A stretch of DNA of 64,000 nt from Rhodosorus marinus CCMP1338 (lineage: Eukaryota > Plantae > Rhodophyta): the NCBI GenBank assembly GCA_029953675.1, contig JAMWBK010000010.1, positions 1,364,001 through 1,428,000 of the forward strand, written 5' to 3'. Shown here piece after piece: positions 13,618-59,650 of the stretch (position 1 is its first letter; every line of letters begins with the position of its first letter). Both the position numbers and the translations under genes were made by a program. Under the pieces are notes generated by a model that saw only the letters and a program-made list of their open reading frames with translations, made no database searches and was not told the origin of the DNA.

Positions 13618-15141
13618 ATGTCAATTGTACAGGGGAAGGGTGGAAGCCTTGTTCCTCTGGCTCCAAAAGGAATTGGATGGAATCTGATAAAGGCAACACT
13701 TGGAAAGACAGGAGCAGCGGCGAAGTTGAAGGAGCGGGAAACTGAAGAGGGAAGGATTCGAAGAGAACGGGACGCTCTAGTTCGTTATAAAGAGCTGGTT
13801 CTTCAGAACTCACACTATCCTGAATCAGCACTTATCTATGCGTCATGGCTTCCCTGGGGAAGGAGAAAACTGTGTCAAGAGGCTATGTTGAAACTGCCAA
13901 TGAGACCAACCTCGAAGGATCACGACTATTACGTTTCCATCCTGGAGAGAGTTGGCGCCGCAGAGCTGCTCTACTTTCATGCGATGAGGCAAGCAGAACC
14001 CAACTTGAGGCTGTGGACAAAGGTTTTCACCGCACTAGCAAACCGCCGGTCGGACTTGTCCTATGTCGGCCTAATCGCTGAGCTGGAGGCCGCTGGCTTA
14101 GAACCCACTCCTATAGCCTATTCGACTTTCCTCCATTTGGCTCGTAGCTCTAAGAACTACGAGATAGTTGAGAAGCTTTTCTACCGGATGAACCGACGGA
14201 ATATCACGATTACGAACGATACTGCTGTGCCAGTAATCGGTGCGTTCATGATGACTGGGAGGCCCAAAGCAGCAGTGAAAGTCCTTAGAATGCTGGAAAG
14301 CCCAGACGCCAGGGTGATCGAGACTGTCATGCACGGTCTGATTCGCAATGACAAATATTGGGCAGCGATGAAGTATTTCGACTACGCGATGTCCCATGAG
14401 ATTCCATTGGACAGTGGGCTGTACAACGCTGGAATTGAGGCTTGCATCGCTGGCGGAAGATGGGACCGCGTTGTGGAGATCGTGGACGATGCCATGATTC
14501 GAGAGGACGTCGTGCTGAGTGACAAGTCCCTCCTGTACGGAATGAAGGCTTTTGCAACAATTGGGGATGTGACGAATGTCCAAACACTATTCGGCAAGGC
14601 CTTGGCTAGAAGGGATCGTGTCACCAACCGTCATTTTCAGATCCTCGCGGAGGGGTATTGCAATAGGGGATTGATCCGAGGTTGCTACTCGTACCTGAGA
14701 ATGTTCATTCGGGCAACTACTAGGATTAAGAAGACAAGGAGTACTCATAACGTTGACGCGACCTGTTTCAATGTCATGATTCAGGAGTGCTTGCTTCGGA
14801 ACGACCTGGCTCTAGGTCTGAGCCTTGGTCAGAAGATGAGAGCCCTCGGCATTGAGCACGACATAGAAACTAGGAGGCTCTTGCGCGATGTCGAGAGACT
14901 TCGCGATGAGGAGAACCAGAAAGGTACGGAGTCGGATGCAACTCCAGAGCGCCCGGAACCTGCAACCGAGAGTGGTATTTTGCACCAGCCGCATATTCCT
15001 TTTGTTCCGAGCCACATCGAGAAGCTGCTACGGGAGCAGGAATACTCTATGGGAGGGGAGAAGCAGAAGAAAATTCCGCGTAGAAGGTTAAGACGGGACG
15101 CCAATACCGACAATCTGGAGCCACCGCGGAGGCTGCCTTGA
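13618..15141 (+). CDS. Pentatricopeptide-repeat (PPR) protein, single exon, 507 aa
   Basis: Tandem ~35-aa helical repeats with PPR signature, e.g. PTPIAYSTFLHLARSSKNYEIVEKLFYRMNRRNI, YNAGIEACIAGGRWDRVVEIVDDA, FNVMIQECLLRNDLALGLSLGQKMRALGIEHD. Confidence 0.82.
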   Translation: MSIVQGKGGSLVPLAPKGIGWNLIKATLGKTGAAAKLKERETEEGRIRRERDALVRYKELVLQNSHYPESALIYASWLPWGRRKLCQEAMLKLPMRPTSKDHDYYVSILERVGAAELLYFHAMRQAEPNLRLWTKVFTALANRRSDLSYVGLIAELEAAGLEPTPIAYSTFLHLARSSKNYEIVEKLFYRMNRRNITITNDTAVPVIGAFMMTGRPKAAVKVLRMLESPDARVIETVMHGLIRNDKYWAAMKYFDYAMSHEIPLDSGLYNAGIEACIAGGRWDRVVEIVDDAMIREDVVLSDKSLLYGMKAFATIGDVTNVQTLFGKALARRDRVTNRHFQILAEGYCNRGLIRGCYSYLRMFIRATTRIKKTRSTHNVDATCFNVMIQECLLRNDLALGLSLGQKMRALGIEHDIETRRLLRDVERLRDEENQKGTESDATPERPEPATESGILHQPHIPFVPSHIEKLLREQEYSMGGEKQKKIPRRRLRRDANTDNLEPPRRLP

Positions 15142-21373: not shown

Positions 21374-23379
21374 GATGTGGTATTTTAACCGCCTGAGTTG
21401 ATAGTTGAGAAGCGATACTGCATGTACTGCAACCAAATTTAGAAGTTGTCATGTGCCCCTTTTTTCCCCTTTTTGAGAAACCGAAAACTAGAATAGAATA
21501 TGGGAGTTTCAGGCATAAATTTGGAACTAGTATTTGTGATCGTGGCTACTAGAATGCGGCTAAACAAATGGGAGCAAGAGTCCAAAACCTGGGGTTTGGA
21601 CTCAGCTGATATTTTTAGATAATTATATAGCTTTCAGCAACTTTCAGCAAATCATCGCACGGAAAGCTTGAAATTCTGGTGGGTGAAATCATGCACCCAC
21701 CCCTACCGCGCTCAAATCGCCTACACATCGCCGAAAAGAAGCTGACAAAGGACAACACACGCCCTCAGTGCTCTTATCGATCGTATTCTAAACTCCTTTT
21801 TTTTCCGTTGTCCCACATCTGGCTATCGATACTTTACTGGACCACAAGAAAGTTCGGAGAGACATTACAAAAACAATCATCACCAGGGGTTGATTCTTCT
21901 CATCACAACACTAAAGGCTTGCAAGTTCCATTGATTACAACACGTTGATCCTAGTTTTGTTCAACCGGGTCTACGATAAAATTTATTCTTCCGTTTTTCA
22001 TATTTCTTTTCTTCGAAGATATAGAAGATTTATCCAGCAAAAACTCGAAACATTATCCAATGGGCATTCTTGTAAGTTCTCCTGTATATGAAAACCCAAG
22101 AATCTACCAATACGCCCCATTTAGTCCCCCCTTTTTGAAGAGCGGGAAGTCATGAGCGTTGTGCCATCTCAGATCCTCACTTCGACACCCTGCTCTGAAA
22201 AACATTCAATATTTTACTGCCTATCGCCCATTTTGTTCTCATTTTTCAACATATTTTCTGAGGTTCCACTCAGGAGACATAGAAATCTTCCAATGAATTT
22301 ATATCCAATCATGATCCTCTGGACAGGTCGATCAACCAACCGAGAGCGTTTATGGTAATTTTATTTTACTAGACATATTTTGTCTATACGATACGCTCTT
22401 GCCTGATAATAATAATAAATAATCTGATGAAAACCCTCAAAATTTTGAATTTTTTAGTACTGGAATTTCTTCCTTACGGGGCGATCTTGTCCTTTTCCCT
22501 TGCTTTCTTCCTCTGAAAAGAAAAAGAGGTAGGGGAATTATGCGCGTGTTCTAACAAAACAAAAAAAATAAAAAAACCCCGTTCTAAGTAAAAGGGCAAA
22601 AAACTCCTTTTGCCTCCTGAATGTCTTTAACTTTTTTGAATGCTCAAATGACACAAATCCGCGGAGCACATCTATTTGTTTTGTTTTTTGGATATTTCCT
22701 TGCAGTTATAGGCTTTTTGGTATGCTTTGAGGGGTATTTTTTTATTCTTTTGGAATTTGTTAAGGAGGGGGGGGGGGATGGTGGATAGGCTGGATTTGTT
22801 CACCTTTTTAGAGTTTTTGGAGGGGTTAGTGAGCATCAAGTTTCAAATTTCTATCTTTGTGATGGGAGGAAAAGGGGCACGTAGGCGGAAAAGGCTTTGT
22901 GACGTGTGAAACTTTGTTCGGAAACGGGAGCGTGGGAGGGGGTGGAAACTGGAAAATCAAGAACTTGCTGATTGAAACGGGTGTTCGCAGTGAGTATGGA
23001 TGTGTGTTAGGTTAGATTAGGTTTGAGGTGGTTACCATTGTTGTTTTCGCAAAGGTTAGTCCGCTGTCAGTAGGCGTTTTCTTGATGATTCGGAATGTGT
23101 TTCGAGTTGAGAGTTTGTCATCTAGGGAGAGCTTGAGATTGTCATAGGAGAACGGTTGTCGGTTGAGTCGTGTGAGTGGGGTTTTTCGGAGGTCCGACTT
23201 TTGGAGGGGGGAGGTTCTGGGAAACTTCTGAGGGAGCAGGCGTGAGCTAGTAAGGGAACTGCAGATGCGCTTCTGTAGGGAAGTCTCGTATGGATGTAGG
23301 ATTCGCGAAGAGAAGGAACGTATTTGGTAATAGAACCAACGGATCAGCACGAAACGGCACTGCACGAGGAGTTGAAACG

Positions 23380-37580: not shown

Positions 37581-40331
37581 ATGGGGGGTGGTAGGAGGAA
37601 CGGGGATGATGGAATGAAGGACGCCGAATCTGGGCGGGTGAAGGAGAGTGTTGGACGCGGGGAGGAGAACGGGGCGAAGGACAGCGGACCGGGCGGTAAG
37701 AAGGAGGAACTATACCAGGTGAGGAATCTTACATCAGGCTAGTTTCTTCCTTGCTTGTCCCGGGGAACGTGATCTTGTACGGTTGCTTGGCATCCCCGAG
37801 CCCTAAGCTAATTTTCGTCTTGTCTTGTTCAACAATATTAGAATTGCAGAATTTGTCTGGGCATGAGGGATTTCGATGAAATGATCCTGTGCGATACATG
37901 CGACAGGGTGAGCGCGCAAACGAGACACTCTCCACTCCCAGGTGTCGAAAACGTTCGTACTCAACGCTTTCAACCGCCAAATGTTTCTTACCTTCCGACA
38001 GGGTTTCCATCTGTACTGCCTAAATCCTCCTCTGGAGTCTGTCCCCGTTGTAAGTTTTCTTATTCATCGCATACGGAAAGCGGAAGCGGGCACCATTCTG
38101 ATCCCTGATAAATTTTGATTCTTTGTTCCAGGGTGATTGGATCTGTCCTCGATGTATACGGCGTGAGAGGAAAAAGCAGCATGAAGTCTCCCGGGGAAAA
38201 CGATTAGTGAACAGAATCCGGGAGGATGTGAAGCTCCTGCGAACTCTGCCCGTGAAATTGAATGCAAAGCTGCTTCTCAAGGAGGAGTTGGAAAACGACG
38301 TCAATTTGGTTCAGTTCCTCTCCCTTCGGGGTAGAACCGTACATGCAAAAGAGGAGATCCCATACGAGGAGAAGAGGACGAGAAAGGGAAGGCGAGGAGG
38401 TCGTGAGCCGGACGCTCTCACGGCCAAACGCCAACCAGGCGAAGCCGCAGACGAAACTGCCGTGGACGAGGAGAAAGCAAAGGTGGAAGTAGAGAGTTAC
38501 CATCGAACGAACCGTAGAGGAACGCGTCAGAATCGTCCCCGGCGGGACAATCTCAGCACCAATGGAGAAGGCAGCAATGGGACGGACTCATCGGCGCAGG
38601 CCGTCGGGTCAGGCTTTCCGGCGCCATCTCAAGGCCAAGCTGCAGCTGTGGAGTCAGCAGGAAACAAGCCTTCAACCACTCGCCGAGCGGCTAAGCCAGA
38701 GGCGGTTATTGTTCCGGAGGCAGCGTCTGTCACGAAACCGGCCAGTGACGATGCCACACCCGCAGCTCCTATATCTCGGCATGCACGGCCGCAATCTCGA
38801 AGCATGGTAGTGGAGGAAATTCCCAGCGCAAAGAAACTGGAACCCTCCAGAACCGCTGATGAACCAGAAAAACGCCGACTACTGCCTTCCATAAACAATC
38901 TGCGGACTGATGGGCCCCCGCTCGGAAAGCTAGGAGGCCACTCTGAAAATGTCCTCCCGCCGCTCCCGACAATGAGTCCTGAAATGGAAACTCTGCCCAC
39001 AGATCCGATCTTGCCACCGCTTTGGACAAAAGAGGGTAAGCAATGATCGCATTAGAAAGCACTGAACGAACCCTGTTTTTTATCTCAGAAGTATTCCTTG
39101 CTAACACGCTTCTCCATTCGGTTGCTTTGGCTCTTAGGTTCTCAGTCACTGGGTCAAAAGGTAAGACCGTGGAGTTTCCCCTTGGTTCTCCTGAATCTCT
39201 GCTTAGTGAATTGTTTTCCTGCCAACTTAGGAAAATGAGAAGGGCTCGGAACAAACTGTGGCATGGCAAGGTGGGGACGCTCCTTATGCGCAATCAGCAC
39301 AGCCACAGGGCCGTTTCGTTGGGCGAGATGGAACCCAGCTCCCTTCTGCGCAAACTGGACAGAAGAAGAAGAAGGATTCTTCTGCCGTCGGAACGCAGCC
39401 TGTTCCTGGAACTGGCAACTTCAAAGTGACGGATGCGAAGAGAAGCACGAAAGGTACGGCGAAAATATTGGGATAGCCGGAAGCGCTATATACTAACGTG
39501 GGCTCTAATGTATCTTGGGTTCCGCAGGCAATTCACGGACGGCTTCCGGGAGCGTCACGGGGAGCACAGCGCGGGGAAATAGATCGGGCCGGAAGACCGC
39601 GGACATCACCGGCGGAGATGTAGGACAAAGGCAGGCGAGTTCTACCAAGGCGACAAGGAAGGGCGACGAAGGCAACGCGCAAGTACCTAGTACTGGGGTG
39701 GGAGCAAGAACTGCTAGGTCTTCAGCTCAGTCCTTGAAGCGGAAGAATATGAAAGGGACAATGGAAGCTGAAAGCGCCAAGAAAATTCTTGAAGAGAAAG
39801 CGGAAGGGCAACAATCGAAGCGCGTACGCAATGAAAGTAAGCTGGTCGTTATATCAGACTAACGAAACTGCCGCGAATGTGTGAAGTGCTCGTTCCTATT
39901 ATCAGTTTCTAACGCGAGTTTGCGCATTGTTTCTTGAACCAGATCCGCTGAGGCCCATCGATGAGATATTGAATTCCCGGGGAGCAGCCAGAGCAGGCTG
40001 GAAAGCAGAGAACGAGTTGGAGGGAACTGATTCAGGGGTCGACCCGAGTGGAGAGGCACGAAGAGAGACGTTCCCTGGTCAGCCGGGTGAATGGAGGATC
40101 CCAGAGTTGCGGGTTCCTCCAATCAGTGGCGGGGTTCCAGCTCGACAAACCCACGTGGATACGCAGCCGCAGATCGTCGGCTTCGGGGGAATTATGCCTC
40201 CGGCGCAAAGGGGTGGATTGCAAATCATGGATTATGGACCGTATGAGCCCAACCATCTGGCTCATTTTCAGCAGCACGGGTCACAAGGTCATCGCCAACA
40301 AATGCGGGTACATCAGCAGCAGCAACAGCAA

Positions 40332-40382
<51 letters not shown>

Positions 40383-40817
40383 CAGCAGCAGCAGGAGATT
40401 CAACACTCTGCGATGAGACAGTCTCGCCTGCCTCAACATTCTGTTCAATACGCTCCAACATCCGGCCAGCAGAGCACAATAGGATTACCCTCCTATGCTC
40501 AGCAGGGGCTGCCTGGGCATCATCAATTGGACCACTCGTTTGGACCCCACCAAGTTGCACCACTTGGCCACGGACCACAAGGGCTCGGTCAATCAGCAAC
40601 TCCAACCGTCAGACAACTGCAGTCGCCGTTGGGACAGCCAGGAACTCCCGGCGGGCTTCCGCAAGGCCCTCAACTGGGACAACCGGGAGGTCCACCAGGA
40701 AGACAAGGACAACAACCGCAGCAGCAGCAGCAACAGGGACAGGGCGGACAACAAGCTAATGGATCAGTTCCGACCCTTACTTCTTTCGCGTCTCTACTCA
40801 AAATGTGGCGTGAGTAG
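37581..40817 (+). CDS. PHD-finger protein with long disordered, Q-rich C-terminus (multi-exon)
   Basis: Spliced PHD: NCRICLGMRDFDEMILCDTCDR|GFHLYCLNPPLESVPV|GDWICPRC (C4HC3). Further exons lie within ORFs 38123-39046, 39258-39476, 39515-39862 and 39927-40817; downstream junctions are less certain. Confidence 0.8.
40314..40394 (+). repeat. Coding (CAG/CAA)n microsatellite, Q22-H-Q4
   Basis: Run of cag with interspersed caa inside the last ORF of the PHD gene. Confidence 0.95.
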
Positions 40818-41729: not shown

Positions 41730-42931
41730 CTAGGGGTTGACAGAGGTCTCGGCAAAGTCCGGAACTCCAACCATCTCCTCAAACCTCTTCACCTCATTTT
41801 CGCTTCCAAAGCAGCACTGCGATTTCACCTCAGTTGAGTCAATCGGAATGTCGAGAACAGATTGCTTGCCTTCTGAACTCTTGGCGCCTCCGGCCTCCAT
41901 CAGGAAGCCAATAGGAGCCACCTCATACAGAACTCGCAACTTGGCCTTGGCGGTAGGAGAAGCCGGGTTGCAGAATACACCCTTGCCCTTGACGAGGATC
42001 TGGTTGACATCCGGCACCATTCCTCCGGTGTATCGAAGCTGGTACTTGTTACTGTTGTAGTAGTCAATAAGCTCCTTGTATCCGTCGTTGTCCTGCGCCG
42101 CTCTGAGGTTTCCGGGAGCGAAAAGCTTGCCCTCCGCGACAGAGAAGAACTCGGCGACGTGGACCCAGGATCCGTGACGTCCTGTCGATTTACAAAGTCA
42201 TCGGATAGTTAGAAACCACGTGCACCAACTCCGTGAAGCGTAAATCCGAACAGCCCAGTCATTTTCGATAAATTCTTACCAGAGAAGTCGTCCATCAAAA
42301 GGAACTCGTGAGCTCCCTCGACACCATCAATAGCCAGGGACATGGTAGTCCTAGGGCCGTAGATGCACAGTCCAGAAGCGGAAAGTTCACGGCCGGTGAT
42401 CCCAGTGAGCTTGCTTCCGGGCCAGATTCCATAGATCGTTCCGACGGAGAAGTTGGTGTCAATGATGGAGGAGCCGTCGAGGGGATCGAAAGCCACGGAG
42501 TAGGAGCCATTCTCCGAGATTGGGACTTCTTTGGGAACTTCCTCAGATGAAGCGGTAGCGCAAGTGCCGCAGTTGGTCAAGTTCTCGAAGATGACTTTGT
42601 CAGAAAGGATATCAATTGCCAGCTGTTCATCTCCAAAGTCGTTGAAGCAAGCAACCTTGTCGCAAGATGCGGTCCTGACCTTGTACGATATTTCCTTGCA
42701 AGCCGCGAACATTGCCCGGATCGTCGTCGACAGTTCGCTCTTGACCTCGTTGTTCATCAACCAGTCTTCCAAAGCAGCACCAGACGCTGCCATCACGGTG
42801 GTGAAGCGCCTCTTCGGTGCAGCCACCTTGATCGATGACCTCACCGCAACTCTTCCAACATTTCCACAGAAAGAAGAAGCCGTCGACGATCCGATTCTCA
42901 CAGAACTAACTCCATTCACAAAAGCAGCCAT
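41730..42931 (-). CDS. SBP: Sedoheptulose-1,7-bisphosphatase, plastid. Exons 42931-42280, 42181-41730
   Basis: MAAFV presequence; [90 protein letters not shown]. Confidence 0.95.
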
Positions 42932-44710: not shown

Positions 44711-45574
44711 TCACAAGTCCCATCCGAGCTCAGAGAGCTTCTGATGTGCCTTTGCGTAGTCCTCAAAGAACTTGTCCTGGTTTGCCGCGTACTCTTCGAC
44801 AAGGGCCTTGCAGTTCGGCTCGTCCATCAGCGCCAGATCGCTCTCCAGTTTCAGGAGGGCGGGATCCGCTTCCTCCTTCACTAGCTCCTGGAAATAGGAG
44901 TTGTCAAACTTCAACATTTCGTGAGTCCAGGGTCCCTCGAATCCGGAACGGTCCTTGTGGGCCTTTCCCAGAGTGTGCGCTCCGGAAAGCGCGACGATCT
45001 CAGCGTCATTGAATCCCATCCGGTAGAAGATATCTCGGAGGTGGCCCATCCTCTGGCCTGCGTCCGGAAGACGGCCATCAGGGGTGCAATTCTCCGGCAA
45101 AGCATCTTTGCGGCCGAGATTAAAGGAAATTTGGGGCCCTCCCGCGTGTGCAACCGCCACAACAGAGGCGAGCTGATAAAGGTCGGCGTACGAAATTTCC
45201 GGGAACTTCTCCTTAATGGGCTCAAGCGTATCCATGGCCCATCCCAGTCCATTGTTTGCTCCGTGATCCCTCTCCGGAGAGAACCTGATGGAAGCATCGG
45301 CTCCTGGAGTCTCGGGCTCATCCTTGTTAAAAGTTCCGGCGTCGTGCCAAGCAAGTCGAACCATGATCGGCTGGCACGGGACCTCATCGTAGAGCTTCAT
45401 CAACGAATCGGTAACCTCCGCAACGTCAACTTTCATACTCACAGGAGTGGTGTGCAATGAAGCCCGGCCGTATCCCATTCCGGCCCTTCGCATCGTCGAC
45501 ATCGATCCGCACACATTGCTCCCGAATGAGAGTCCTCTGCGGACCAACAAACCACTGCTCCCAACAAAAGCCAT
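44711..45574 (-). CDS. APX: Plastid ascorbate peroxidase (class I heme peroxidase), single exon
   Basis: MAFVGSS presequence; MVRLAWHDAGT (distal R/W/H), ERDHGANNGL, SYADLYQLA, GRLPDA, ALSGAHTLG (proximal His), SGFEGPWT, FFEDYAKAHQKLSELG. Confidence 0.95.
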   Translation of the reverse strand: MAFVGSSGLLVRRGLSFGSNVCGSMSTMRRAGMGYGRASLHTTPVSMKVDVAEVTDSLMKLYDEVPCQPIMVRLAWHDAGTFNKDEPETPGADASIRFSPERDHGANNGLGWAMDTLEPIKEKFPEISYADLYQLASVVAVAHAGGPQISFNLGRKDALPENCTPDGRLPDAGQRMGHLRDIFYRMGFNDAEIVALSGAHTLGKAHKDRSGFEGPWTHEMLKFDNSYFQELVKEEADPALLKLESDLALMDEPNCKALVEEYAANQDKFFEDYAKAHQKLSELGWDL

Positions 45575-47671
45575 TCTACAAAAATTAAGATTTACCAACA
45601 AGCTGAAACAAGAGAATTGAAACTTCTTAATCCTTCTAGCCCTTTCGTCTCCCTCAATCTCCCTCTCCTCCTTCGCTTCCCGCTGCCGTCATCGTGCTCA
45701 ACCGATGTCATCCACCGCTAGATAAAACCTTTCCAGGAGACCCAAAATCCAAGGCGTTTTCGGCAGCAGCCATTTGGTCTATCTCTGATAACCAATATAT
45801 GAATCTTTACCCCTTTTTTCAAAACCATGACTCCATGCATCCATTATCGAGGGGTTCCTCATGGACGGTTCCATTTATCCCGGATACCATTCTTTGAAAA
45901 CCATTGGTTTAAATATCTGCCGTCCGCACATTTATACGAATTATAGAACTATACGTGTTATTAACATTTTTATTGGATGAAAGTTTTTATTAAGAATATA
46001 TAATTGGTTAACTTTATATGATTAGTTATAAATTAGTTGCCTCAGATGGAATTTGAAAGTTGATTTAAGAGGGGTATCGTCTTATTTTCGGAGTATACAC
46101 AATTAATGGTCTTTGCAAAGGGGGGGTTTGGTTCACGTGGAAATACAGGATCTCCGTGCAATGGAATCAAAGCAAAAAAATTTCCTTTTAACCAAAAACG
46201 AGTTAGTGGTGATGTGAAACATGTATTGTTTTATTTTATTGAGGTTTTGCGGTGGCCGTTGTGCCTCGGTGGAATGGAATCTCATTTCCCCCTAGTTGCT
46301 TCCTCTGGTGGTTTCTGTATCAATTGTATGGGAAGACTGTCTATGGTGGGAAAGGATAGTGCTTTATCAGTGGGAATCTGTTTGATCTCCAGTAGCTGAC
46401 GGATGCATGATCGTTTGCTGTGGACAGAGGACTTTAGCCCGATTTGAAGTGGACTTGAGTGAAGTAATTGATCCAAAGCTCCTTGGACTTTTCAGAATGC
46501 ATGTGGCTCATCGTCGGAACCAGACAGAGGAAATTCACATACATCGTAAAAAAATTAGATCGAAATGGAGCAGCTAAGCCACTGGCTAATGGAAGCAGGT
46601 GCGTACAGTACACATGAGAGAGAACGTCGGCAGGTGATACACCTCGTGCCAGTCGAAAAAGCCGTGGCCTATGCTCCAAATGTCCGCGTAGCTACACGCA
46701 GATCCGCCAAACTTTTAGCAGTGAGCAAGCGGCGTTTCAAAAGCACCAGGGGGGTTATAGACCACCGCAGGCAGGTTCCCCAAGCACACTGCCTGCCGGC
46801 TCTGCTCACCTCGGCTTAATGCGGATCTCAACAGCTAGCTCAGGGAAAATCTCAATAAGCTTGTGCCATGAGTTCTAGCCGGTCGACGTCAGTGGGACCG
46901 TATAGAAGCGCCCGAAATTTGCTCATCCAGCTTCTTGACAGATACCTATCCACAACACTCCTCATTGATACCCTACGGAGCGCATCAGACAAAGCTAGTT
47001 CCCTCTACGCGACCACAAAACACCAAAATTGCAATACTCGTAGCCATTTTCCCCCTCTTTCAATGAAGATAAAATGTCGTTTTTGAAAATAAATTAGACC
47101 AGGTAGCACTGCATCCTTCAAAAACCAATATGAAAAAGTACATTTTTTAATAATTTATCGAAATGATGATATTCCCGTTTCAATCAAATTATATATATAT
47201 TTCAAATATCTCAAAGACTAAATTTCCAACCAAACACAAACTAATCAGAGAAATTTTCGAAAATCAATCTCGACTTGCTTGGGTGTTGGCCTTTGGAAAT
47301 ACTTACTTTCTTCACGTCTTTCTGTTTCCATCATTGGAAAAGTTTCTAATTTTAAAAGGAATCTAATGGATCATAAAAGGAAAACAATTTCATGTCACGA
47401 AAGCTTTACTTTCGGGAAGTTTTGGGAAGAAGATGAGAACGTAATTTTTCATATGAAGGTTTCCGTTGGTGATAATTAAAGGATGGAATGAGATTTTGGT
47501 GTGGAGAGGATGATATAAGAAGACGAGGGGGAGTGGAGGATTTAAAAGCTTTGGTGATGGAGTTCACTTTTGATTTGGTTTTTCCGAGTCGTTGATTTTG
47601 CTTTTCTCTGCTCGATTGTTTTGGAGGGTGAGGAGGCTGGGTTCGGGAAGCGGTTTGAGTTTTGCGTTGAG

Positions 47672-48472
47672 ATGGAGGAGGAAGGCGAGAAATCAAAACA
47701 GGTATTAACCTGTGCGGTTGTTCATAAGGGAGTAAATAAGGTGGGCAAGATGCATGTTATGTCGGACCACTTGGTGTTTCGGTCCGGCTTGTTGAATGAT
47801 CCGCCGGAGGTGAGGATCCAGTATGATGATGTGGAGCATTTGAAGAGAAGAGGGGTGGGCGGAATCTCCATAGAATTGAAAGAACCCGAAGGAGAAATAT
47901 GGAGGTTTGCAACTTTTCCTAGGCCGGAATTCGCATATCGAACTTTAAAATCGGCTATGGGTTTCGAGACGCTCCCCGACGAGGAGGAAGCAGCGGAGGA
48001 GCCCACTGGCACCAGAATTGAGCCGCAGGATACGAAGGCAGTGCCCCAGACCGGCACTGCGAAGATTGAAAATCAACAGACTGAACCCGTCAGTGACCAG
48101 GAACCTGTATCCGTGGTTCCGGTCCCTACACAACAGTGGAGGAACGATTTGTGGAAAGAAGACATAAACAAAATGCAAAACCCAAAAATCGTCAGCGATA
48201 TGGATGCAGTGATGGACTCCGATGCAGACGAGGACTCAGACAATCTAAGTACGAGCTCGTCGGGGTCGAATAGTCCCGGTGTAAAGACTCCAGATGCCGT
48301 TCAACGTGCCCAAATTTCTCCCAACGCACTCATCATTGTGCTTTCAATTTTCGTGCTGGTGCTTGTTGTTATCATGGTCATCGAGGCTCTCGATGCGAAC
48401 GAATTCGCTACAAATGAGCTCTACATTTTGAAGCGGTCTGCTTGGGATTACGACACATCCCACCCGCTTTGA
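47672..48472 (+). CDS. GRAM-domain protein with C-terminal TM helix
   Basis: N-terminal TCAV...GKMHVMSDHLVFRS...IQYDDVEHLKR...WRFATFPRPEFAYRTL resembles GRAM (PH-like); acidic linker; TM ALIIVLSIFVLVLVVIMVI. Confidence 0.7.
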   Translation: MEEEGEKSKQVLTCAVVHKGVNKVGKMHVMSDHLVFRSGLLNDPPEVRIQYDDVEHLKRRGVGGISIELKEPEGEIWRFATFPRPEFAYRTLKSAMGFETLPDEEEAAEEPTGTRIEPQDTKAVPQTGTAKIENQQTEPVSDQEPVSVVPVPTQQWRNDLWKEDINKMQNPKIVSDMDAVMDSDADEDSDNLSTSSSGSNSPGVKTPDAVQRAQISPNALIIVLSIFVLVLVVIMVIEALDANEFATNELYILKRSAWDYDTSHPL

Positions 48473-48744: not shown

Positions 48745-49557
48745 TCAACCCGTGGCCTCGGCGGAGACATTCGGATAAAACCTGGCTCCGAAGATCGTAG
48801 ATCCTACGCGGACGTTAGTAGATCCTAGTTTGGTGGCTGTCTCAAAGTCGCCACTCATTCCCATGGACAGCTCGAGACTCGTGGGGCTTCTGTTGAGCGC
48901 TTCAGCTACTTGATTCCGCAACGAGGCCAGGCTCTTGAAATCCTCGTTATCTGGCCCAGCGTTGGCCATACCAATAGTCATCAAACCAATCAGGGAGAGC
49001 CCTGGGCAGTTCGAGACGATATGATTGGCAACGTCTACCGCTTCGCCTTTCCCAGCGCCGGATTTGGCTTCTTCCTCTGAGACGTTCACTTGGAGCATGA
49101 CTCGGAGTGGTTCCGACTTTTCAACCCACTCCTTGTTCAACGCGTCTGCAATCTTTATTCTGTCAACGGTCTCCACGCACCATAAATTCTCCACTTTGGA
49201 GAGCAGCTTCGCCTTGTTCGACTGAAGGGGTCCGATGTAGTGCCAACAAATATCTTTCGGGAGTTCTTCTGCTTTCCTTACAAGCTCCTGCGCATAGTTC
49301 TCCCCAAAGTGTCTCTGACCAACCTCATAAGCGTCCATGATCATTTCCGACGGTTTTGTCTTTCCAACAGCAACAAGCCTCGGTACATCCGTCCTCCCCG
49401 CTTCCTTCGCCGCCTTCTCCAAGCGAGCCTGAACCGACTGTAACGCAATCTTCACAGACAAGTCCCGAGCTTGAGAATCCGAATTCACACTCATCGCTCT
49501 ACGAACTGACGGCAATCTAAAGCTCCTCCCAAATCCTACCAGACCAACGAACGCCAT
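48745..49557 (-). CDS. PLPBP: PLP-binding protein (YggS/PROSC family) with plastid-type presequence
   Basis: LVAVGKTKP (PLP lysine), [44 protein letters not shown]; starts MAFVGLVGF. Confidence 0.94.
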
Positions 49558-50354
49558 CCACCAACGAGGACCGAAACACGAAACGATAAAACAAACTCTC
49601 AACGGACAACAACAAATCCAGCCCAACCAATGCAAACCTCGTCAAGACATCACGTTCTAAACTTCTACAATCTCCACTATTCTTATCGACCTCGAGATTC
49701 ACAAAATGATCTAATTTCCTAGTCCTTATCGACAAATTCAAATATGGGAACGTTTTCACCCCTTTAGGCGCCCTCATGTCCAAAACCAACTGCATCCATC
49801 ACGGCGTCCACAGCAGCCATCCAATGCAACCACCTCCACAAGTGATACCCGGTTCATGGGACTGTCCCAGAACTGTCCCAAACTTGATTCTGGTTGGCTG
49901 ACAGCTACAGCCGGCATTCCCACTGGATGGATTCCTAGAGGCTGGCTCTCGGACTTGGCGATGAGAGAAGTTTTTCTGCATTGTAAGTCGCGATAGGTTT
50001 ACGGATGAGATGAATATCTCCATCGGAGCTTCCTAACACCGAGGTGTTTGGACGGGGCTAGGACTCTCCGCGTTGCGCCCAGGTCGGGGTTTTTCCAGTG
50101 TCTGTTGACAAACGTTTTGGATATGGTGAGTCTAGATAGTTATATGCGTCTGCTTACCAGAATTTCAACCCATGCGCTGCCAACACGAAGCGGATGTTGA
50201 GGTACGAGATTTAGTATGAGCAAACGCAAACGTTGCGAGAGGGAGATTTTTGCGGTAGGCAGCTGACACTTGTTGGTTTGTTTAGCGTCAAACAGAGCTT
50301 GCGGTGAACGGGAGCTCATTCTGAATAGATTGTGTGTCATAAAATAAGTTTTCT

Positions 50355-53608: not shown

Positions 53609-54914
53609 CGTCCCTCGTTCACCACCAACCCCCTTCAAGGCTGCTCCGCCACAAGGTGCAATCAGCCTTTGGAATAGTTCCTAGCACCTTTCTCCCCCAG
53701 TGCTCTCTACGGGGACTCTGGACAAAATTCCATTTACGATCCCGCCTCCTTCATTGGCAGTGATACCGGGCTCGAGTCGCCTATGACAAGGTGCGAAGGA
53801 GATATCCCTCAGAGCTGGTCAAGCATTTGGAGGTAAGTGGTTTGCTTCATGGGCTGCTTCAACCACCACCATTGGTTGCACTACTTGATAAGCAAGCGGG
53901 GGAGCGTTCTGCAGGAAGTCGATCGGCCGGCAATGATGGAAAAGCGGCGAAAATCAAGTCGTCGCGACAGCACGTACGATGAGACTATGGTTAGAGGCAC
54001 TCCCAACGGAAGGGAGAGACACATGTAGAAGCACTCATAAAACAGCTGCAGCTTCAATTCAAACTAGAGATTAGCAAGACGCGGAACAAGGATCACTCAA
54101 ACTCAACCAAAAGGGTTATCCCACGGAGACAGCCTGTCTCTCCCACCCGACGATTCTTGTATGGACGGTTGTCAATTTATGATTGGACTAAACCATCTCC
54201 TTGCTCATCGCCATACAATATTGAATAATATTATTTTACTGAACATGTCGTGAAAACGAAGTCAGTTCTTCTATATTTCAGTTTTCGTTATGCGACGGAC
54301 GTGACTTTTTGTTCGTACTAGCATTATATAAGAACTTTTATTGGAACATGTCAAACCTTAAACCCGCTTTTGATGGAATCTAAGAGATTATTATCCAACA
54401 AAAAGAGGAAATGAAAAATAAGAAACGTATATTGTCAAATGAAAACATAGAATGGGTCTATTGTCGATGCGGTTCCATTTTGTTTCGTTTTTTTAAAATG
54501 AAGTGATTCTGAAACCAAGTGAGTAGGAACCGAGTTGGGAAACTTTTGGCAAGAGGCATTTTGGTCGCGGTAAAGTTGGCCATTGAGTTTGGTCCCGACG
54601 GGAGATGTAGAAAACGAGGGTTTTAGGGGGTTTGATGAAATAGATCAGGAGCCAGTTGGAGATTTTTTCATATTGCGAGTGAGTTTTGGGGTTTTCAAGC
54701 GTTGGGAGGGAGGGGGATGAATGTATTGGAATTTGGATGGTAACGAGGGAGCTGGAAGAATATTTAGGTAGAGTGTGGAAGAATTTCTGTGAAGGTAGGC
54801 CTCTAGAGAGGGCAAGTGAAAGGTATTGTTCTTGTTTTGTAGCTCAAGAGGATGGGGGTTGGGGTTTAGGGGATTGTGTTTGTGGAGTTTTGTGGTAGTG
54901 TGGGTTTTTGGGGT

Positions 54915-57900
54915 ATGATGAATGCTGCGGACTTGGGTCGTGGGCTGTGTTTTCCTTCTCGTCCTGGATTTGTTGGGACACTGAATAGCGTCGGACGAGG
55001 CTCCAGGCGGAGCTGTGTGGAGTATAGAAGAAGTCATGGGCAGGGACTGGCGTTGAGGATGACCCTCGAGCAGCCTTCAGGGGAGGAGGATGGGCAGGTA
55101 AGAAACCACATGGAGTGCGACGTGGGAAAAATCGTGCAGTGATAATCGCGAACAAGCTAGCCTTGTACTCGTTGGTGTTTTCCCTGTGCTGCTCCGATGC
55201 GGGGGTGGCATGAATTTTTGTTTTGTTCGCCGCATTTGGCATTCCCGAGTACTTGAGGGGGTTTGGAACACTCGGGCCTCTGCATGGAATCCATGGGTCT
55301 GAAAATTCCTTGTTGTTGATTAGGACAAGCCGCAACGACGTGGACGCCCAAGGAAGAAGCCCCTGGCAGAGGACGAAACCGAGGCAACCACTGAAAAAGC
55401 AAGGGGGCGAAGAAAAATGGAGTCTGATGGTACGTTACCAAGATAATTCCTTACTCTGCGTACCGTACCGCAGATGATCGTTTACTTCAGACGTATTCTA
55501 ACGACGCAGCCTTTTCTTCGTGACATGGGCACGCGGACGTACAGAAGAAGGTGAGCCGAATGCCAATTCGACAACAGGTAGTAACGAAAATACTGACAAG
55601 AACGTGGAAACTGATGAAGGCTATGAGGATGATGCGGTCGCTGGTGATGACCTGGCCAAGCTTATTTTTGATGAGCTCAATATCGAAGGGTACGTCCTAC
55701 CCCTGGTTAGAAGCTCGGAGTGGATGCTCCTCACCATTTATGCACTAATCACTCGAACGGATATCTATCTATTCACTCCTTGCTGGCTACTCAGGCGCCC
55801 TCGTTCAAAGAAGGAGCAGGAAGAAGACGATCGCAAGTTCGATGAATTTCTTAAACGAGGTGGGGAACCTGAAGAATTGTGGGCAGAGATCGAGGAAGGA
55901 GATGATGCAGATAGCTCAGGAGGTACTTTCGGCGAAACCACCCTGATCAAGTTGCACTAATGACAACTCCGGAGGTGGTTCCTAAACCTACCTCTACGTT
56001 TCAACACTTGTTCAAGGCGCGTCTGTACTGAACGGAGCCGCCGTCCAGAGCCGACTAAGGCTTGATTCGGACGCGGAGGAGACGGAAGAGGACGATCTGT
56101 TAGCATCTACCTCCAAAGGTGCAACCTCAGTCCTCGTGGACGGAGATGACGTTGACGAAAACGCGTGTGTCCGGCCTTGATAAAAACTTGCTTAATTGTT
56201 ACTTTTTCGCAGCTGTTTTATCTTAACTGAGGAAGCGAAACTGTTTTTTGTTTGGACAGCTTGGAGGATGTCGATGACGATGAGGATCTCAGTCTGTTCA
56301 CAGATCTCGGAATCGAAGACCTTGACGGAGAAGCATCTGATGGTCCTCAAAACGAGGATGAAGAGGATATGAGCTACATTGATGGCTACTTCGAGAACAG
56401 GCGAGATGCTGATGCCGTAAGTCCCATACAGCGAAGATTGCTTCCGTCCGTGTTCTTTGGCTTTTAACTGTTCTTCTTTGAGAAGCTTGTCGATTTTTGG
56501 CAACCCTGGGCTCGTTGTTCAGTTGCCACACGTTTCCCATCAGGGTCTCATGCATGTTGCAGAGCTTTCCTGTCCACGGCTTGCTATATGGACAAAAGTT
56601 TGGCACTTTTGTATCTAAATTTGCTTGTGCGCATCCGCGTGACTGATCTTACTACAGGATGCCAGCGGACGAGGCGACGAAGAAGATGACGACTCCGATG
56701 GTGCGGGCGAAGACGACGATGATGACGACGATGATGACGACGATGACGACTTCGATGAGTATGACGATATTCTTGTTGAAGACACTACCCAGGTCGACGA
56801 CGACATTGGCGAGACCTATACGTTCACATCGGTGCCCGCCGAGGAGGAGGATGTCTATGATGACGACGATGGGGATGTTGTTGAGGTCTCGGAAGAAGAG
56901 GCAACCACGAAGGTAGCAAAGAAGACGCCGAAGAGAAGTGCGCTTGGCACGGATGCCGAACTTCTCGCATGTAGGGAACAAAACGCCTTAAAACAAACTC
57001 ATGTAGCTGATGAAGTCATATTTTCAACAGTGAACTAACGGTCAAGTCTTAATGCTCATCCGTTAGTGCTCAGCAACACATCTAGCACAAAAGTCCAAAA
57101 GAGTAGTGCTGAACCACTGAAAACGAAGGAAAAGGGTAAGTGGCCTGCCAAGAAACTTTGAATGTTGCGCGAGCCCTACTAAGTCGATCAGCGATTGAAC
57201 CTGCTTCTCCTCTCGTTCAGAATCTGCAGAAGCCGCTGCTCAGTTGGAGGAGGTAGAGGATGACTATGACGAGGAAGACCTCTTCGATGAGGAAGAGGAG
57301 GAAGTGAAGACCCTGGAGGACTACGACGAGGATGACAGAGACGAGATTGACCAGTATATCGGCGAGATGGCCACCCAAAGAGGAGTTACTGCGAAAGTTC
57401 TTGATGTAAATGAGGATGAGTATATAACGGTTACCGAGGGTCCAGACAAGGACTTTATTTGGGGCGACGACCTCGCTGAAGAAGACAAGGTTGCCTTCGA
57501 CGCTGGACTAGATGAAGCCCCAAGGTAGGCACCGCGCGATCTTTGGTTTACTTTCTGAGCATACCTTCTGACAAAAACGAGTGCGGTTTGTATCAAATCT
57601 CCGAAGGATTGGAATCTTTGGAGGTACGGCGAAAGAAGCGGCGAGGCGAGGAGAGATTGTCGAGGGAAGCTCCGACTGGTTTGCTAGACAACTGTTCGAG
57701 AAGTCGTTATCCGTCCAGGAAACAAACGGCCTTGCATGGCTGAAATGGGTCAAGGGAGTGGGAGCCCCTCCGCCGGAAATAGAAGAGATTATGGCAACAA
57801 GATTCCCAAAACCGAAACTGGTACACTAGTGGAGCTGCGCTCGTAGTCCTCGTCGTCGATGAGCTTGTCGGCTAACACGCATTCGTATTGCTTTGTGGCA

Positions 57901-58161
57901 CCCCAGGGTACCATCGTCGCGACACCAACTCCCATGGTGTCTCTTTCCGCCGATGAGGACGAAGCCGATGAGGACGACGAAGATGAAGATGAAGCTGACA
58001 TTGAATCAGATGATTCGGAAATACTGGATGTTGAGGAAACTGACGATGATGCCGAAGATGTGGATGATACTGGGGATGTGGACGACGTGGCGGACGTTGC
58101 TCAAGACTTAGGATTGGATGTAGACTTGGACGAGATTAATGTTGCGGATGAGAACTCGTAG
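54915..58161 (+). CDS. Uncharacterised highly acidic protein with AT-hook and plastid-type presequence, ~11 exons, roughly 650-700 aa
   Basis: Phase-compatible GT-AG introns (55098-55323, 55430-55544, 55690-55794, 55923-56016, then further ones including 57525-57606) link exons. Features: RRGRPRKK at 55336-55359, long D/E tracts and one non-acidic segment RIGIFGGTAKEAARRGE...LAWLKWVKG. The exon 7/8 junction is ambiguous. Confidence 0.75.
56712..56750 (+). repeat. Coding (GAC/GAT)13 poly-Asp tract
   Basis: gacgacgatgatgacgacgatgatgacgacgatgacgac in exon 7 of the acidic protein. Confidence 0.9.
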
Positions 58162-58716
58162 GCACGTGGCGAGTGCACTGATGATATGTGACTAACTCTG
58201 CTCTTGATCTTGACCGTTGTTTAGCTTTCGCAACTATCAGAGCCTCGCTTCTGCGAACCCTTGGTTTAGGCAGGAACCAATCATTCTCAGGCGACTTCGC
58301 TGCGTTAGTTTCTCACTATTCCTTTCCCTGAGAACAATCGCATTCCACAACTGGCCGTCTATTAAGGGTTCCGAATATGCTAAGTGACTTTAGGTGGGAC
58401 TTCAGCTCTCCGTTCATCAACTTCTTAGTGAATTTGGAATTAAATGACTAAGCTTGGTGGCTGCTCTGGATCTCGGGCCACGAATACATCCAACCGAAAT
58501 AGTTGGCGTGCCATTAGGACTATCATTGAATTGTTTCCTCAAAGCTGAGCGTCTTCGTACAAGCTGAAGATTTCTCACGCCTCGATTGTGGCGCATCATT
58601 TCGTGGCTCGGCAGCGTGTCTTGGCTGTGCTATGTGCTCCATTGGTCGTCCACGAGGGCCCTGTTTTCAACTCGCTGAGCTGGTACAAAATACAGATACA
58701 TTCTTTTTCAATTGAA

Positions 58717-59650
58717 TCATAAAAGCCTTGTCTGTATAAAGCTCGGCGTTTCGATATAGCGGAAAAGATGCTGTCTAGCAGTCTTTTCAGGGTTGATCTG
58801 TACATCTGCGCTGGTCACCGCTACCAGCGAACCGTTTTCAGGAACCTCGGAGTGCCCTTCAGCCCAGCTCAAAAGTTTGCTCGTGATAATCGATGGTGGG
58901 GTCCAGTCGGGTTCCGCTTTGCCGTTGTTCATGTTTCGATGGATCGTGGTGTCAAGTACCTAAAGAAAAACTGATCAGTCAGAGATTCAATTCATTTCGC
59001 CAACAAACCTGAGGCTTGATGGCCTGATGAAAGAAACAATCTGGCGCGCGGCTCACCACCGGGACAATTCCAATCACACGAACACCCTCCGGCAATTCGG
59101 TCCCAACGCTCAAAGCGACGGTTCTCACGATTTGATGGAGGGCAGCTTTTGCTATACTATATCCAATCGTATGTGTCTGCGAAAATGCTGCTACAGAACC
59201 CAAGAAGAAGAGCAGCCCCCCGGGCTTGATGAATTGGCAGGCTAGCTTCGCGGTTACCAGGCTCGCATCGACGTTGGTGTGCATCATGAAATCAACGGAT
59301 TCAAATAGCTCATCCGAGCCTAATCCTTCCGCTGTGAAACCAATCGTCGTATTGAACATTACATCGAAGGGTCTTGGGTCTTTAAAGGATTCGCTTATCA
59401 TTCGATTGGCGAAGCTAACCTGAGAGCGTGGTGGTGCTCCAGGGGGCAAGCATAGCGAATGATCGCAAGTAGGGGCTTCAAAATTATCTATCGAACAGAC
59501 CTGGTATCCTTTCAGTTCTAACAACTCAACCTCTACTAGTCGAAAGGCTTATGAGACACTCACCTCGTACCCAGCCTCCTTAAACACCGCCGAGTACGCA
59601 CTCCCCAGTTCAGATCCACCTCCAAAGGCAAACGCAACCTTCGCATTCAT
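58717..59650 (-). CDS. Dihydropteridine reductase (QDPR)-like short-chain dehydrogenase, 3 exons
   Basis: AFGGGSELG...E|VCSID, KPGGLLFFLGSVAA, IGYSIAKAALHQIV (YxxxK), IGIVP|VLDTTIHR...DWTPP...LLSWAEG...ENGSLV, co-linear with QDPR GYGMAKGAVHQL...LPVTLDTPMNR...SWTP...SGSL. Confidence 0.8.

Follow-up and report, generated by a model that had tools for sequence, protein, structure and literature searches.

Among the described proteins that join an AT-hook to acidic sequence, the HMGA proteins are small and nuclear and carry three hooks with a short acidic tail. In a second described group, the polyacidic chaperones, including nucleoplasmin, the acidic tails of FACT, Chz1 and prothymosin-alpha, long tracts of Asp and Glu (D/E) are combined with aromatic anchors. 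In this study we analyzed a gene located at positions 54915-58161 on the plus strand of a 64,000-nucleotide stretch of DNA (referred to as the window) from the red alga Rhodosorus marinus CCMP1338, the product of which, a protein of 673 amino acids (aa), is here called the candidate. It resembles the HMGA-type proteins in its R-G-R-P core with K/R flanks and in acidic sequence that could modulate DNA binding, but differs from them in that it has a single canonical hook, an acidic portion of approximately 575 aa, a presequence at the N-terminus and a conserved module that is unrelated. With the polyacidic chaperones it shares the long D/E tracts with aromatic anchors, but no sequence or fold relationship was detected (no domain of nucleoplasmin, NAP or other known families of chaperones for histones and basic proteins by Pfam, Protein Data Bank (PDB) sequence search or Foldseek), and it probably resides in an organelle, a compartment that lacks histones. 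By analogy, the candidate may work most like these polyacidic chaperones and the HMGA-type hook-plus-acid proteins, being a member of neither group.

An AT-hook is also suspected in TAC53 of Trypanosoma brucei, an organellar DNA-linked and strongly basic protein with an isoelectric point (pI) of 10.8 (PMC13108849), compared with a pI of 4.05 for the candidate; the likeness is that of a motif in a protein bound for an organelle with AT-rich DNA, and homology is not implied. A fourth comparison is given by DUF493/YbeD (UPF0250, PF04359), which as bacterial YbeD is a stand-alone protein (Pfam model of 84 positions) without acidic tracts or module. Four relatives (P0006, P0007, P0009 and P0013) end in this domain and share the module and the acidity of the candidate, which itself lacks DUF493; these relatives appear, from the searches performed, to be its only tie to a catalogued family. 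Sequence comparison places the candidate in a hitherto undescribed family of acidic proteins, of which all named members are from red algae, and the best explanation as a whole, to which we assign a probability of roughly 0.45, is that of an organelle-imported acidic chaperone or scaffold that would be docked through the module. As it stands, this is an uncharacterized lineage-specific protein and not the discovery of a mechanism; orphan, disordered and lineage-specific proteins are common.

The conserved module and its family

A 147-aa segment of the candidate, extending from the latter part of exon 9 into the beginning of exon 11, was used as the phmmer query against 1.84 billion representative proteins, and 9 matches were obtained at E <= 0.001 (reported E-values 6.9e-32 to 9e-4). 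These included P0001, a transcript open reading frame (ORF) of a second Rhodosorus strain from MMETSP; P0002 of Purpureofilum apyrenoidigerum (EukProt; E = 6.9e-32, 46% identity over the module); and P0006, P0007 and P0009 (E about 1e-4), which share the motif blocks described below. A profile search added FGB62_21g39, a hypothetical protein of Gracilaria domingensis, together with P0013 and P0014, and the E-values of the profile matches ranged from 8.6e-58 to 1.2e-19. A word-indexed homology search with the 147-aa module gave no matches, which represents a failure in sensitivity of the index, because the exhaustive phmmer search found the transcript of 97% identity. P0005, in which 30 residues of repetitive sequence were matched seven times, was dismissed as a low-complexity false positive.

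The module of about 130 aa, encoded by the end of exon 9, exon 10 and the start of exon 11, recurs inside long D/E tracts of the relatives. In the two alignments (A1 and A2) it starts with a beta-hairpin-like block, (R/K)V(W/L)(E/D)LN(D/E)DxY(V/I)T(V/I)TE, which is followed in order by a Gly-rich turn G(G/W)xxG, by EGSx(D/E)WxAR(R/Q) and by KWxK...PPxxIxE, the last two blocks being carried on predicted helices. The candidate carries all the blocks in the same succession over about 130 aa, with D/E tracts on either side, and all the family members are acidic, with a D+E content of 16-37%. The three exons concerned are as follows.

57221..57524, plus strand: exon 9, acidic at first and, from about 57340, encoding the first half of the module, DEIDQYIGEM...KVLDVNEDEYITVTEGPDKDFIWGDD
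57607..57820, plus strand: exon 10, the second half of the module, predicted helical, IGIFGG...EGSSDWFARQLFE...LKWVKGVGAPPPEIEEI...PKL
57907..58161, plus strand: exon 11, the end of the module (GTIVATPTPMVSLS, 57907-57948) and then the acidic C-terminal tail, with the stop codon at 58159-58161

The module part of exon 9 can be aligned to the motif RVWELNDDxYVTITEPG found in the relatives and is conserved at the DNA level with L007, a locus of a close relative. L007 holds the 3' part of an orthologue whose introns occupy identical positions, following ...APR and ...KL, and which has an acidic tail and lacks DUF493; the alignment of the two loci at the DNA level is limited to exon sequence. The minus-strand short-chain dehydrogenase (SDR) gene downstream of the candidate gene (58724-59473) is syntenic with L007 (2809-3764, 68% nucleotide identity), and the local gene order is therefore conserved.

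The initial annotation recognized no family for this protein. With respect to catalogued families this holds: Pfam analysis of the protein, the module and all alignment members gave sub-threshold noise only (KOW, E = 0.17-0.19; SH3_9, E = 0.097), and searches of PDB by sequence and by Foldseek revealed no characterized family. It no longer holds in view of the red-algal family detected by phmmer and profile search. The same annotation singled out exactly 57607-57820 as the segment likely to fold, in agreement with the AlphaFold2 (AF2) model run on alignment A2, in which exon 10 forms four helices with a predicted local distance difference test score (pLDDT) of 66-75 and the score stays below 50 outside these helices. 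With 97% identity between the two strains and a pLDDT of about 70 found only there, exon 10 is the constrained and probably folded part of the protein.

A C-terminal DUF493/YbeD domain, carried by most of these relatives, was found by Pfam scan in P0006, P0007 and P0009 (E about 1e-9), and P0013 carries it as a precomputed Pfam assignment. Pfam analysis of the 673 aa of the Rhodosorus protein detected no such domain, and tblastn with the domains of the relatives gave nothing significant in the window; its absence is further supported by the transcript P0001, which ends at the same stop codon. The acidic tail replaces DUF493 in the version of the Stylonematophyceae (Rhodosorus, Purpureofilum and L007). 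A weak match of a relative's DUF493 domain at 58726-58884, shortly after the stop codon (tblastn, E = 7.1), was rejected, as the frame encodes unrelated sequence and the DNA conserved with L007 coincides with a minus-strand ORF of L007 beside the SDR gene. In Chlamydomonas, a DUF493 gene is placed beside genes for plastid ribosomal proteins in a table of regulated genes (PMC11313482). On the contigs L002, L003 and L004, which encode P0006, P0009 and P0007, respectively, the gene is one uninterrupted ORF, as opposed to the 10 introns in Rhodosorus, and the called genes on these contigs are closely spaced at a GC content of 48-60%; the three proteins share the motif DIQSAAEIL..GLLGLG, which Rhodosorus lacks.

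In the candidate, the AT-hook QRRGRPRKKP lies at aa 65-74, with a GRP core and Arg/Lys on both sides, and RRGRPRKKPLA is unchanged in P0015, a second MMETSP transcript ORF of the other Rhodosorus strain, in spite of differences in the flanking residues. The RGRP sequence is expected by chance about 0.004 times per protein of this length (an estimate based on composition); the Pfam AT_hook model, which is short, returned no score that could be reported for the protein. The hook RRGRPRKK of exon 2 is genuine, as initially annotated, and conserved in the second strain. A motif scan of the family members found no AT-hook in any of the DUF493-bearing relatives: the motif is present in Rhodosorus and in Purpureofilum P0002, where KPRGRPPA lies at a different position of the chain, and the L007 contig ends before the hook region. 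On this distribution the AT-hook apparently belongs to the Stylonematophyceae lineage and not to the core of the family. Because it is absent from the DUF493-bearing relatives, anchoring to DNA cannot be the core function of the family, and the DNA-anchored nucleoid organizer initially proposed is weakened. As far as the alignments indicate, the conserved core is the orphan module together with the polyanion, and not DNA binding.

Gene structure, transcripts and composition

The locus is a real, expressed nuclear gene of R. marinus, which belongs to the Stylonematophyceae. After three-frame translation of 54400-58700, we identified 11 exons and 10 introns, all of GT-AG type and with consistent phases, that form an uninterrupted coding sequence of 2022 nucleotides (nt) for a protein of 673 aa and 74 kDa. 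The public annotation (GCA_029953675.1, contig JAMWBK010000010.1) places a 673-residue gene without Pfam family at identical outer coordinates, and the features initially annotated in this region were all found in place, with the right exon structure. The 31-Mb assembly (PMC10250338), annotated by BRAKER trained on RNA-seq, contains 24,821 introns in 8,392 genes; a gene thus has about 3 introns on average, compared with 10 in the candidate gene.

The exons, for which a check by transcripts had been recommended, were confirmed at 9 of the 10 splice junctions by the MMETSP transcript ORFs of the second strain. P0015, an ORF of 388 aa, runs collinear with aa 1-393 and confirms junctions 1-6, including the joining of exon 1 to exon 2, on which the initial annotation depended, and P0001 (277 aa) is collinear with aa 394-673 and confirms junctions 8-10 and the stop codon, with the same C-terminus (...INVADENS) as the candidate. 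Both ORFs were found by phmmer, and a third result, from a word-indexed search, agrees with them. The features upstream of the module are listed below.

54565..54914, plus strand: upstream region or 5' untranslated region (UTR), G+T-rich and C-depleted (7% C), GC skew +0.70
54915..55097, plus strand: exon 1, aa 1-61, beginning MMNAADLGRGLCFPSRPGFVGTLNSVGRGSRRSCVEYRRSHGQGLALRM
54915..55061, plus strand: presequence-like N-terminus, aa 1-49, of basic composition and ending in LALRM, 84% identity to P0015
55324..55429, plus strand: exon 2, a basic patch with the AT-hook core RRGRPRKK at 55336-55359
55396-55416, plus strand: second basic cluster of exon 2, KARGRRK, from reading of the sequence
55545..55689, plus strand: exon 3, acidic and least conserved (56% identity between strains), with the terminal motif DDLAKLIFDELNIE
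55795..55922, plus strand: exon 4, carrying RKFDEFLKRGGEPEELWAEIEEG, 88% identity to P0015
55688-55689 plus 55795-55813, plus strand: degenerate GRP motif EGRPRSKK made by the exon 3/4 junction, both junction and motif being kept in P0015
56017..56164, plus strand: exon 5, acidic, from translation and alignment with P0015
56260..56416, plus strand: exon 6, with the short conserved motifs EDLSLFTDLGIEDLDG and MSYIDGYFENRR, 94% identity to P0015
56658..56970, plus strand: exon 7, a polyacidic stretch that includes the D13 run (56712-56750) and precedes the basic patch TTKVAKKTPKRSALG
56971..57066, plus strand: intron 7, 96 nt, donor gtaggg (weak), still present in both of the MMETSP transcript ORFs
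57067..57135, plus strand: exon 8, a short S/T/K-rich linker, collinear with P0001

A stretch of 23 aa at the start of exon 3 (EGEPNANSTTGSNENTDKNVETD, 55545-55613) is missing in the orthologue of the MMETSP strain, by either a strain-specific indel or the use of an alternative acceptor. The identity between the two Rhodosorus strains is 97% for the conserved module (including exon 10), 94% for exon 6, 84% for the presequence of aa 1-49, 80% for the basic, AT-hook-carrying exon 2, 74% for the C-terminal tail and 56-88% for exons 3-5 (56% for exon 3).

The extreme acidity initially pointed out, including the D13 run (aa 308-320), was borne out by the composition: Asp accounts for 17.8% and Glu for 14.9% of the residues, giving a D+E content of 32.7% (about 220 acidic residues), a pI of 4.05 and a net charge of about -157. 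Low hydropathy and strongly negative net charge were found in nearly every 25-aa window, and together with the pLDDT of the AF2 model they suggest that the protein is largely a disordered polyanion. Short conserved motifs of acidic plus aromatic residues are embedded in the acidic tracts (EDLSLFTDLG, MSYIDGYF, DDYDEEDLFDEEEEE and EEDVYDDDD), and the two motifs of exon 6, EDLSLFTDLGIEDLDG and MSYIDGYFENRR, are present also in Purpureofilum P0002 and at locus L007. With a single hook set against about 220 acidic residues and this net charge, stable binding to DNA is doubtful and would be weak or autoinhibited.

Localization, proposed mechanism and alternative explanations

The N-terminal 49 aa contain 8 K/R as against 2 D/E and have a pI of 11.5, a composition poor in acidic residues and rich in S/T/A/G/R as in transit peptides, and the first 60-65 residues of P0006, P0009 and P0011 are likewise almost without acidic residues, as in targeting peptides. 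From these N-termini, from the bacterial-type domain of the relatives and from the listing of the Chlamydomonas DUF493 gene, import into an organelle is predicted as likely; the plastid is the foremost destination, with a chance slightly short of even, a mitochondrial localization is considerably less probable, and nuclear or dual targeting is less probable still. The transit peptides of rhodophytes are marked by Phe at the very N-terminus (PMC7038456). Exon 1 had been described initially as a red-algal transit peptide, which agrees with its basic, acid-poor and 84% conserved sequence but not with the position of Phe, and the lack of Phe at the very N-terminus speaks against a firm assignment to the plastid over the mitochondrion.

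According to the explanation that we favor, the precursor would be imported into an organelle, the plastid rather than the mitochondrion, and its presequence would be removed near the boundary between LALRM and the following T. The conserved module would then dock onto a conserved partner, and the polyacidic tracts with their acidic-plus-aromatic motifs would serve as an electrostatic chaperone or scaffold for basic, nucleic acid-binding clients such as HU and ribosomal proteins. The N-terminal AT-hook and basic patch would be a lineage-specific addition, by which the basic N-terminus may either hold a minor share of the protein molecules on AT-rich nucleic acid of the organelle or fold back onto the acidic tracts and regulate them. 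A stromal role as such an electrostatic chaperone or scaffold of basic clients is put forward with low confidence. Red-algal plastids keep the bacterial HU, and, to our knowledge, lack the plant-type nucleoid and PEP-associated proteins; we know of very few descriptions of nucleus-encoded plastid proteins that were invented in the red lineage. If the explanation is correct, a red-algal family of organelle-targeted polyanions with a new module would offer a handle on the organelle biology specific to the red lineage, and the family would give a context for the widespread but uncharacterized DUF493/YbeD domain. For annotation, its value is that R. marinus, Purpureofilum, Gracilaria and several contigs are linked into one family.

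Several observations weigh against this explanation. The mechanism taken by itself, which was inferred from composition, is rather unlikely. The first Phe residues of the candidate are at positions 13 and 19, and the candidate differs in this region from the neighboring genes for SBPase/FBPase, APX and YggS, which have in-frame MAAFV or MAFVG starts; RPRKK-x15-RGRRK of exon 2 can be read as a bipartite nuclear localization signal. The AF2 model is weak as a whole, with a mean pLDDT of 53.6, the best Foldseek match of the module model in PDB was at E = 2.2, and sequence and profile searches of PDB gave no match or matches at E >= 0.2. The restriction to red algae is based on three named species, the other members being on Logan, ENA or JGI contigs, and remote homologues may exist in other lineages. 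In addition, the splicing of junction 7 finds no support in the MMETSP transcript ORFs.

The alternative that survives best, though improbable, retains the same family and mechanism and places the protein in the mitochondrial matrix instead of the plastid. It accounts for the Arg-rich presequence, in which Arg occupies position -2 relative to the putative cleavage site (between LALRM and T in the candidate, between AARM and A in P0009), and for the absence of the very-N-terminal Phe. A mitochondrial site would also fit the genetic link of bacterial YbeD to the metabolism of lipoate, a process located in eukaryotes largely in mitochondria. Opposed to it are the internal sequences PGFVG, AFAVP and PAFAHVG, which resemble the MAFVG starts of the plastid-type neighbors, and the listing of the green-algal DUF493 gene beside plastid ribosomal protein genes (PMC11313482).

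A little less probable is the plastid nucleoid organizer, in which the AT-hook would lie in the minor groove of AT-rich DNA and the polyacidic sequence would be a DNA mimic or a condensate scaffold for HU or RNA polymerase. Its canonical hook core is kept in the two Rhodosorus strains, a PRGRP motif is present in Purpureofilum, the N-terminus is presequence-like, and AT-hooks are suspected in the organellar DNA-linked TAC53 of T. brucei (PMC13108849); but the hook of Purpureofilum is at a different position, every DUF493-bearing relative is without it, so that the conserved function is not hook-dependent, one canonical hook faces a net charge of about -157 that we infer to oppose DNA binding strongly, and the plastid localization is itself a prediction.

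An unlikely third alternative is a nuclear chromatin protein, HMGA-like or similar to histone chaperones, of which aa 1-49 would be merely a basic disordered segment. The AT-hook and the bipartite signal-like sequence of exon 2, the long acidic tracts and the missing canonical N-terminal Phe agree with it, as do the many short motifs of acidic residues plus Tyr/Phe, which we take to resemble the 'cap-anchor' motifs for histones H2A-H2B. However, the relatives combine a bacterial-type DUF493 with acid-free presequence-like N-termini and carry no AT-hook, and no match to a histone-chaperone or HMG family was found by Pfam.

At a similarly low level we place a more elaborate scheme for the Stylonematophyceae, in which an ancestral plastid protein of acidic region, module and YbeD-like domain was rebuilt into a DNA-tethered polyanion that would form a new layer of plastid nucleoid organization, invented by eukaryotes. 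The AT-hook would pin the protein to AT-rich plastid DNA, an acidic brush of about 575 aa with aromatic anchors would recruit or evict HU-like basic proteins, and regulated retention of intron 7 could switch between the full-length form and a form with hook and acid only.

Retention of intron 7 also underlies the still less probable proposal that the locus normally yields two polypeptides, a 388-aa protein with presequence, AT-hook and acidic region and a 277-aa module protein. Both MMETSP ORFs break within this intron, P0015 ending inside (...AELLACTEQSSLTQTHVYDEMIILRMN) and P0001 starting inside (MPIRLVLSNAS); no other donor in the gene is as weak as its gtaggg, and retention of the intron brings in an in-frame stop, the frame of the window reading ...AELLACREQNALKQTHVADEVIFSTVN up to the stop codon. 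The splicing is backed solely by the RNA-seq-trained BRAKER model and by the single Purpureofilum ORF that spans both halves. These two stand against the proposal, since the annotation splices the intron and since the acidic region and the module are on one chain in the Purpureofilum ORF and in all the distant relatives; furthermore, a second ORF located downstream on a eukaryotic mRNA is seldom translated. The retention itself could be regulated, so that the protein is split between hook plus acid on one half and module on the other, or could be an artifact of assembly.

Least probable among the readings weighed is a calsequestrin-like, module-anchored store or buffer of high capacity and low affinity for cations (Ca2+, Mg2+ or polyamines), in favor of which are the 33% D+E with the D13 run and the acidity kept across the family; the conserved hydrophobic and aromatic motifs within the acidic tracts (94% identity in exon 6) suggest specific protein contacts instead, and Pfam gave no EF-hand or calsequestrin match. 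A pyrenoid linker was dropped, because a relative is found in Purpureofilum apyrenoidigerum, a species presumably named for lacking a pyrenoid, and because the protein is acidic and contains the module only once.

Other features of the window

No tRNA genes were found in the window, which holds a single-exon PPR gene (13618-15138) and another single-exon gene (47672-48469). At 39927-40817 (plus strand), a poly-Gln run of about 25 Q with one His lies within a Gln/Pro/Gly-rich ORF that forms part of a longer gene (at least 861 aa) for which the annotation lists no Pfam match.

Depletion of C in the 350 nt of the coding strand upstream of the start was observed also for the genes starting at 23290 and 47672 (plus strand) and at 42931, 45574 and 49557 (minus strand); including the candidate gene, the C content was 7-15%, and the GC skew was +0.35 to +0.64 at these genes and +0.70 at the candidate gene. 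This has the appearance of a genome-wide promoter or 5'-UTR signature, not of a feature specific to one gene.

On the minus strand, APX (44711-45601) is annotated with 263 aa and the YggS-like protein (48745-49635) with 249 aa, and the in-frame ORFs reach Met-Ala-Phe-Val-Gly starts that give 287 and 270 aa, respectively; the annotated models of both genes may truncate targeting peptides of the rhodophyte type.

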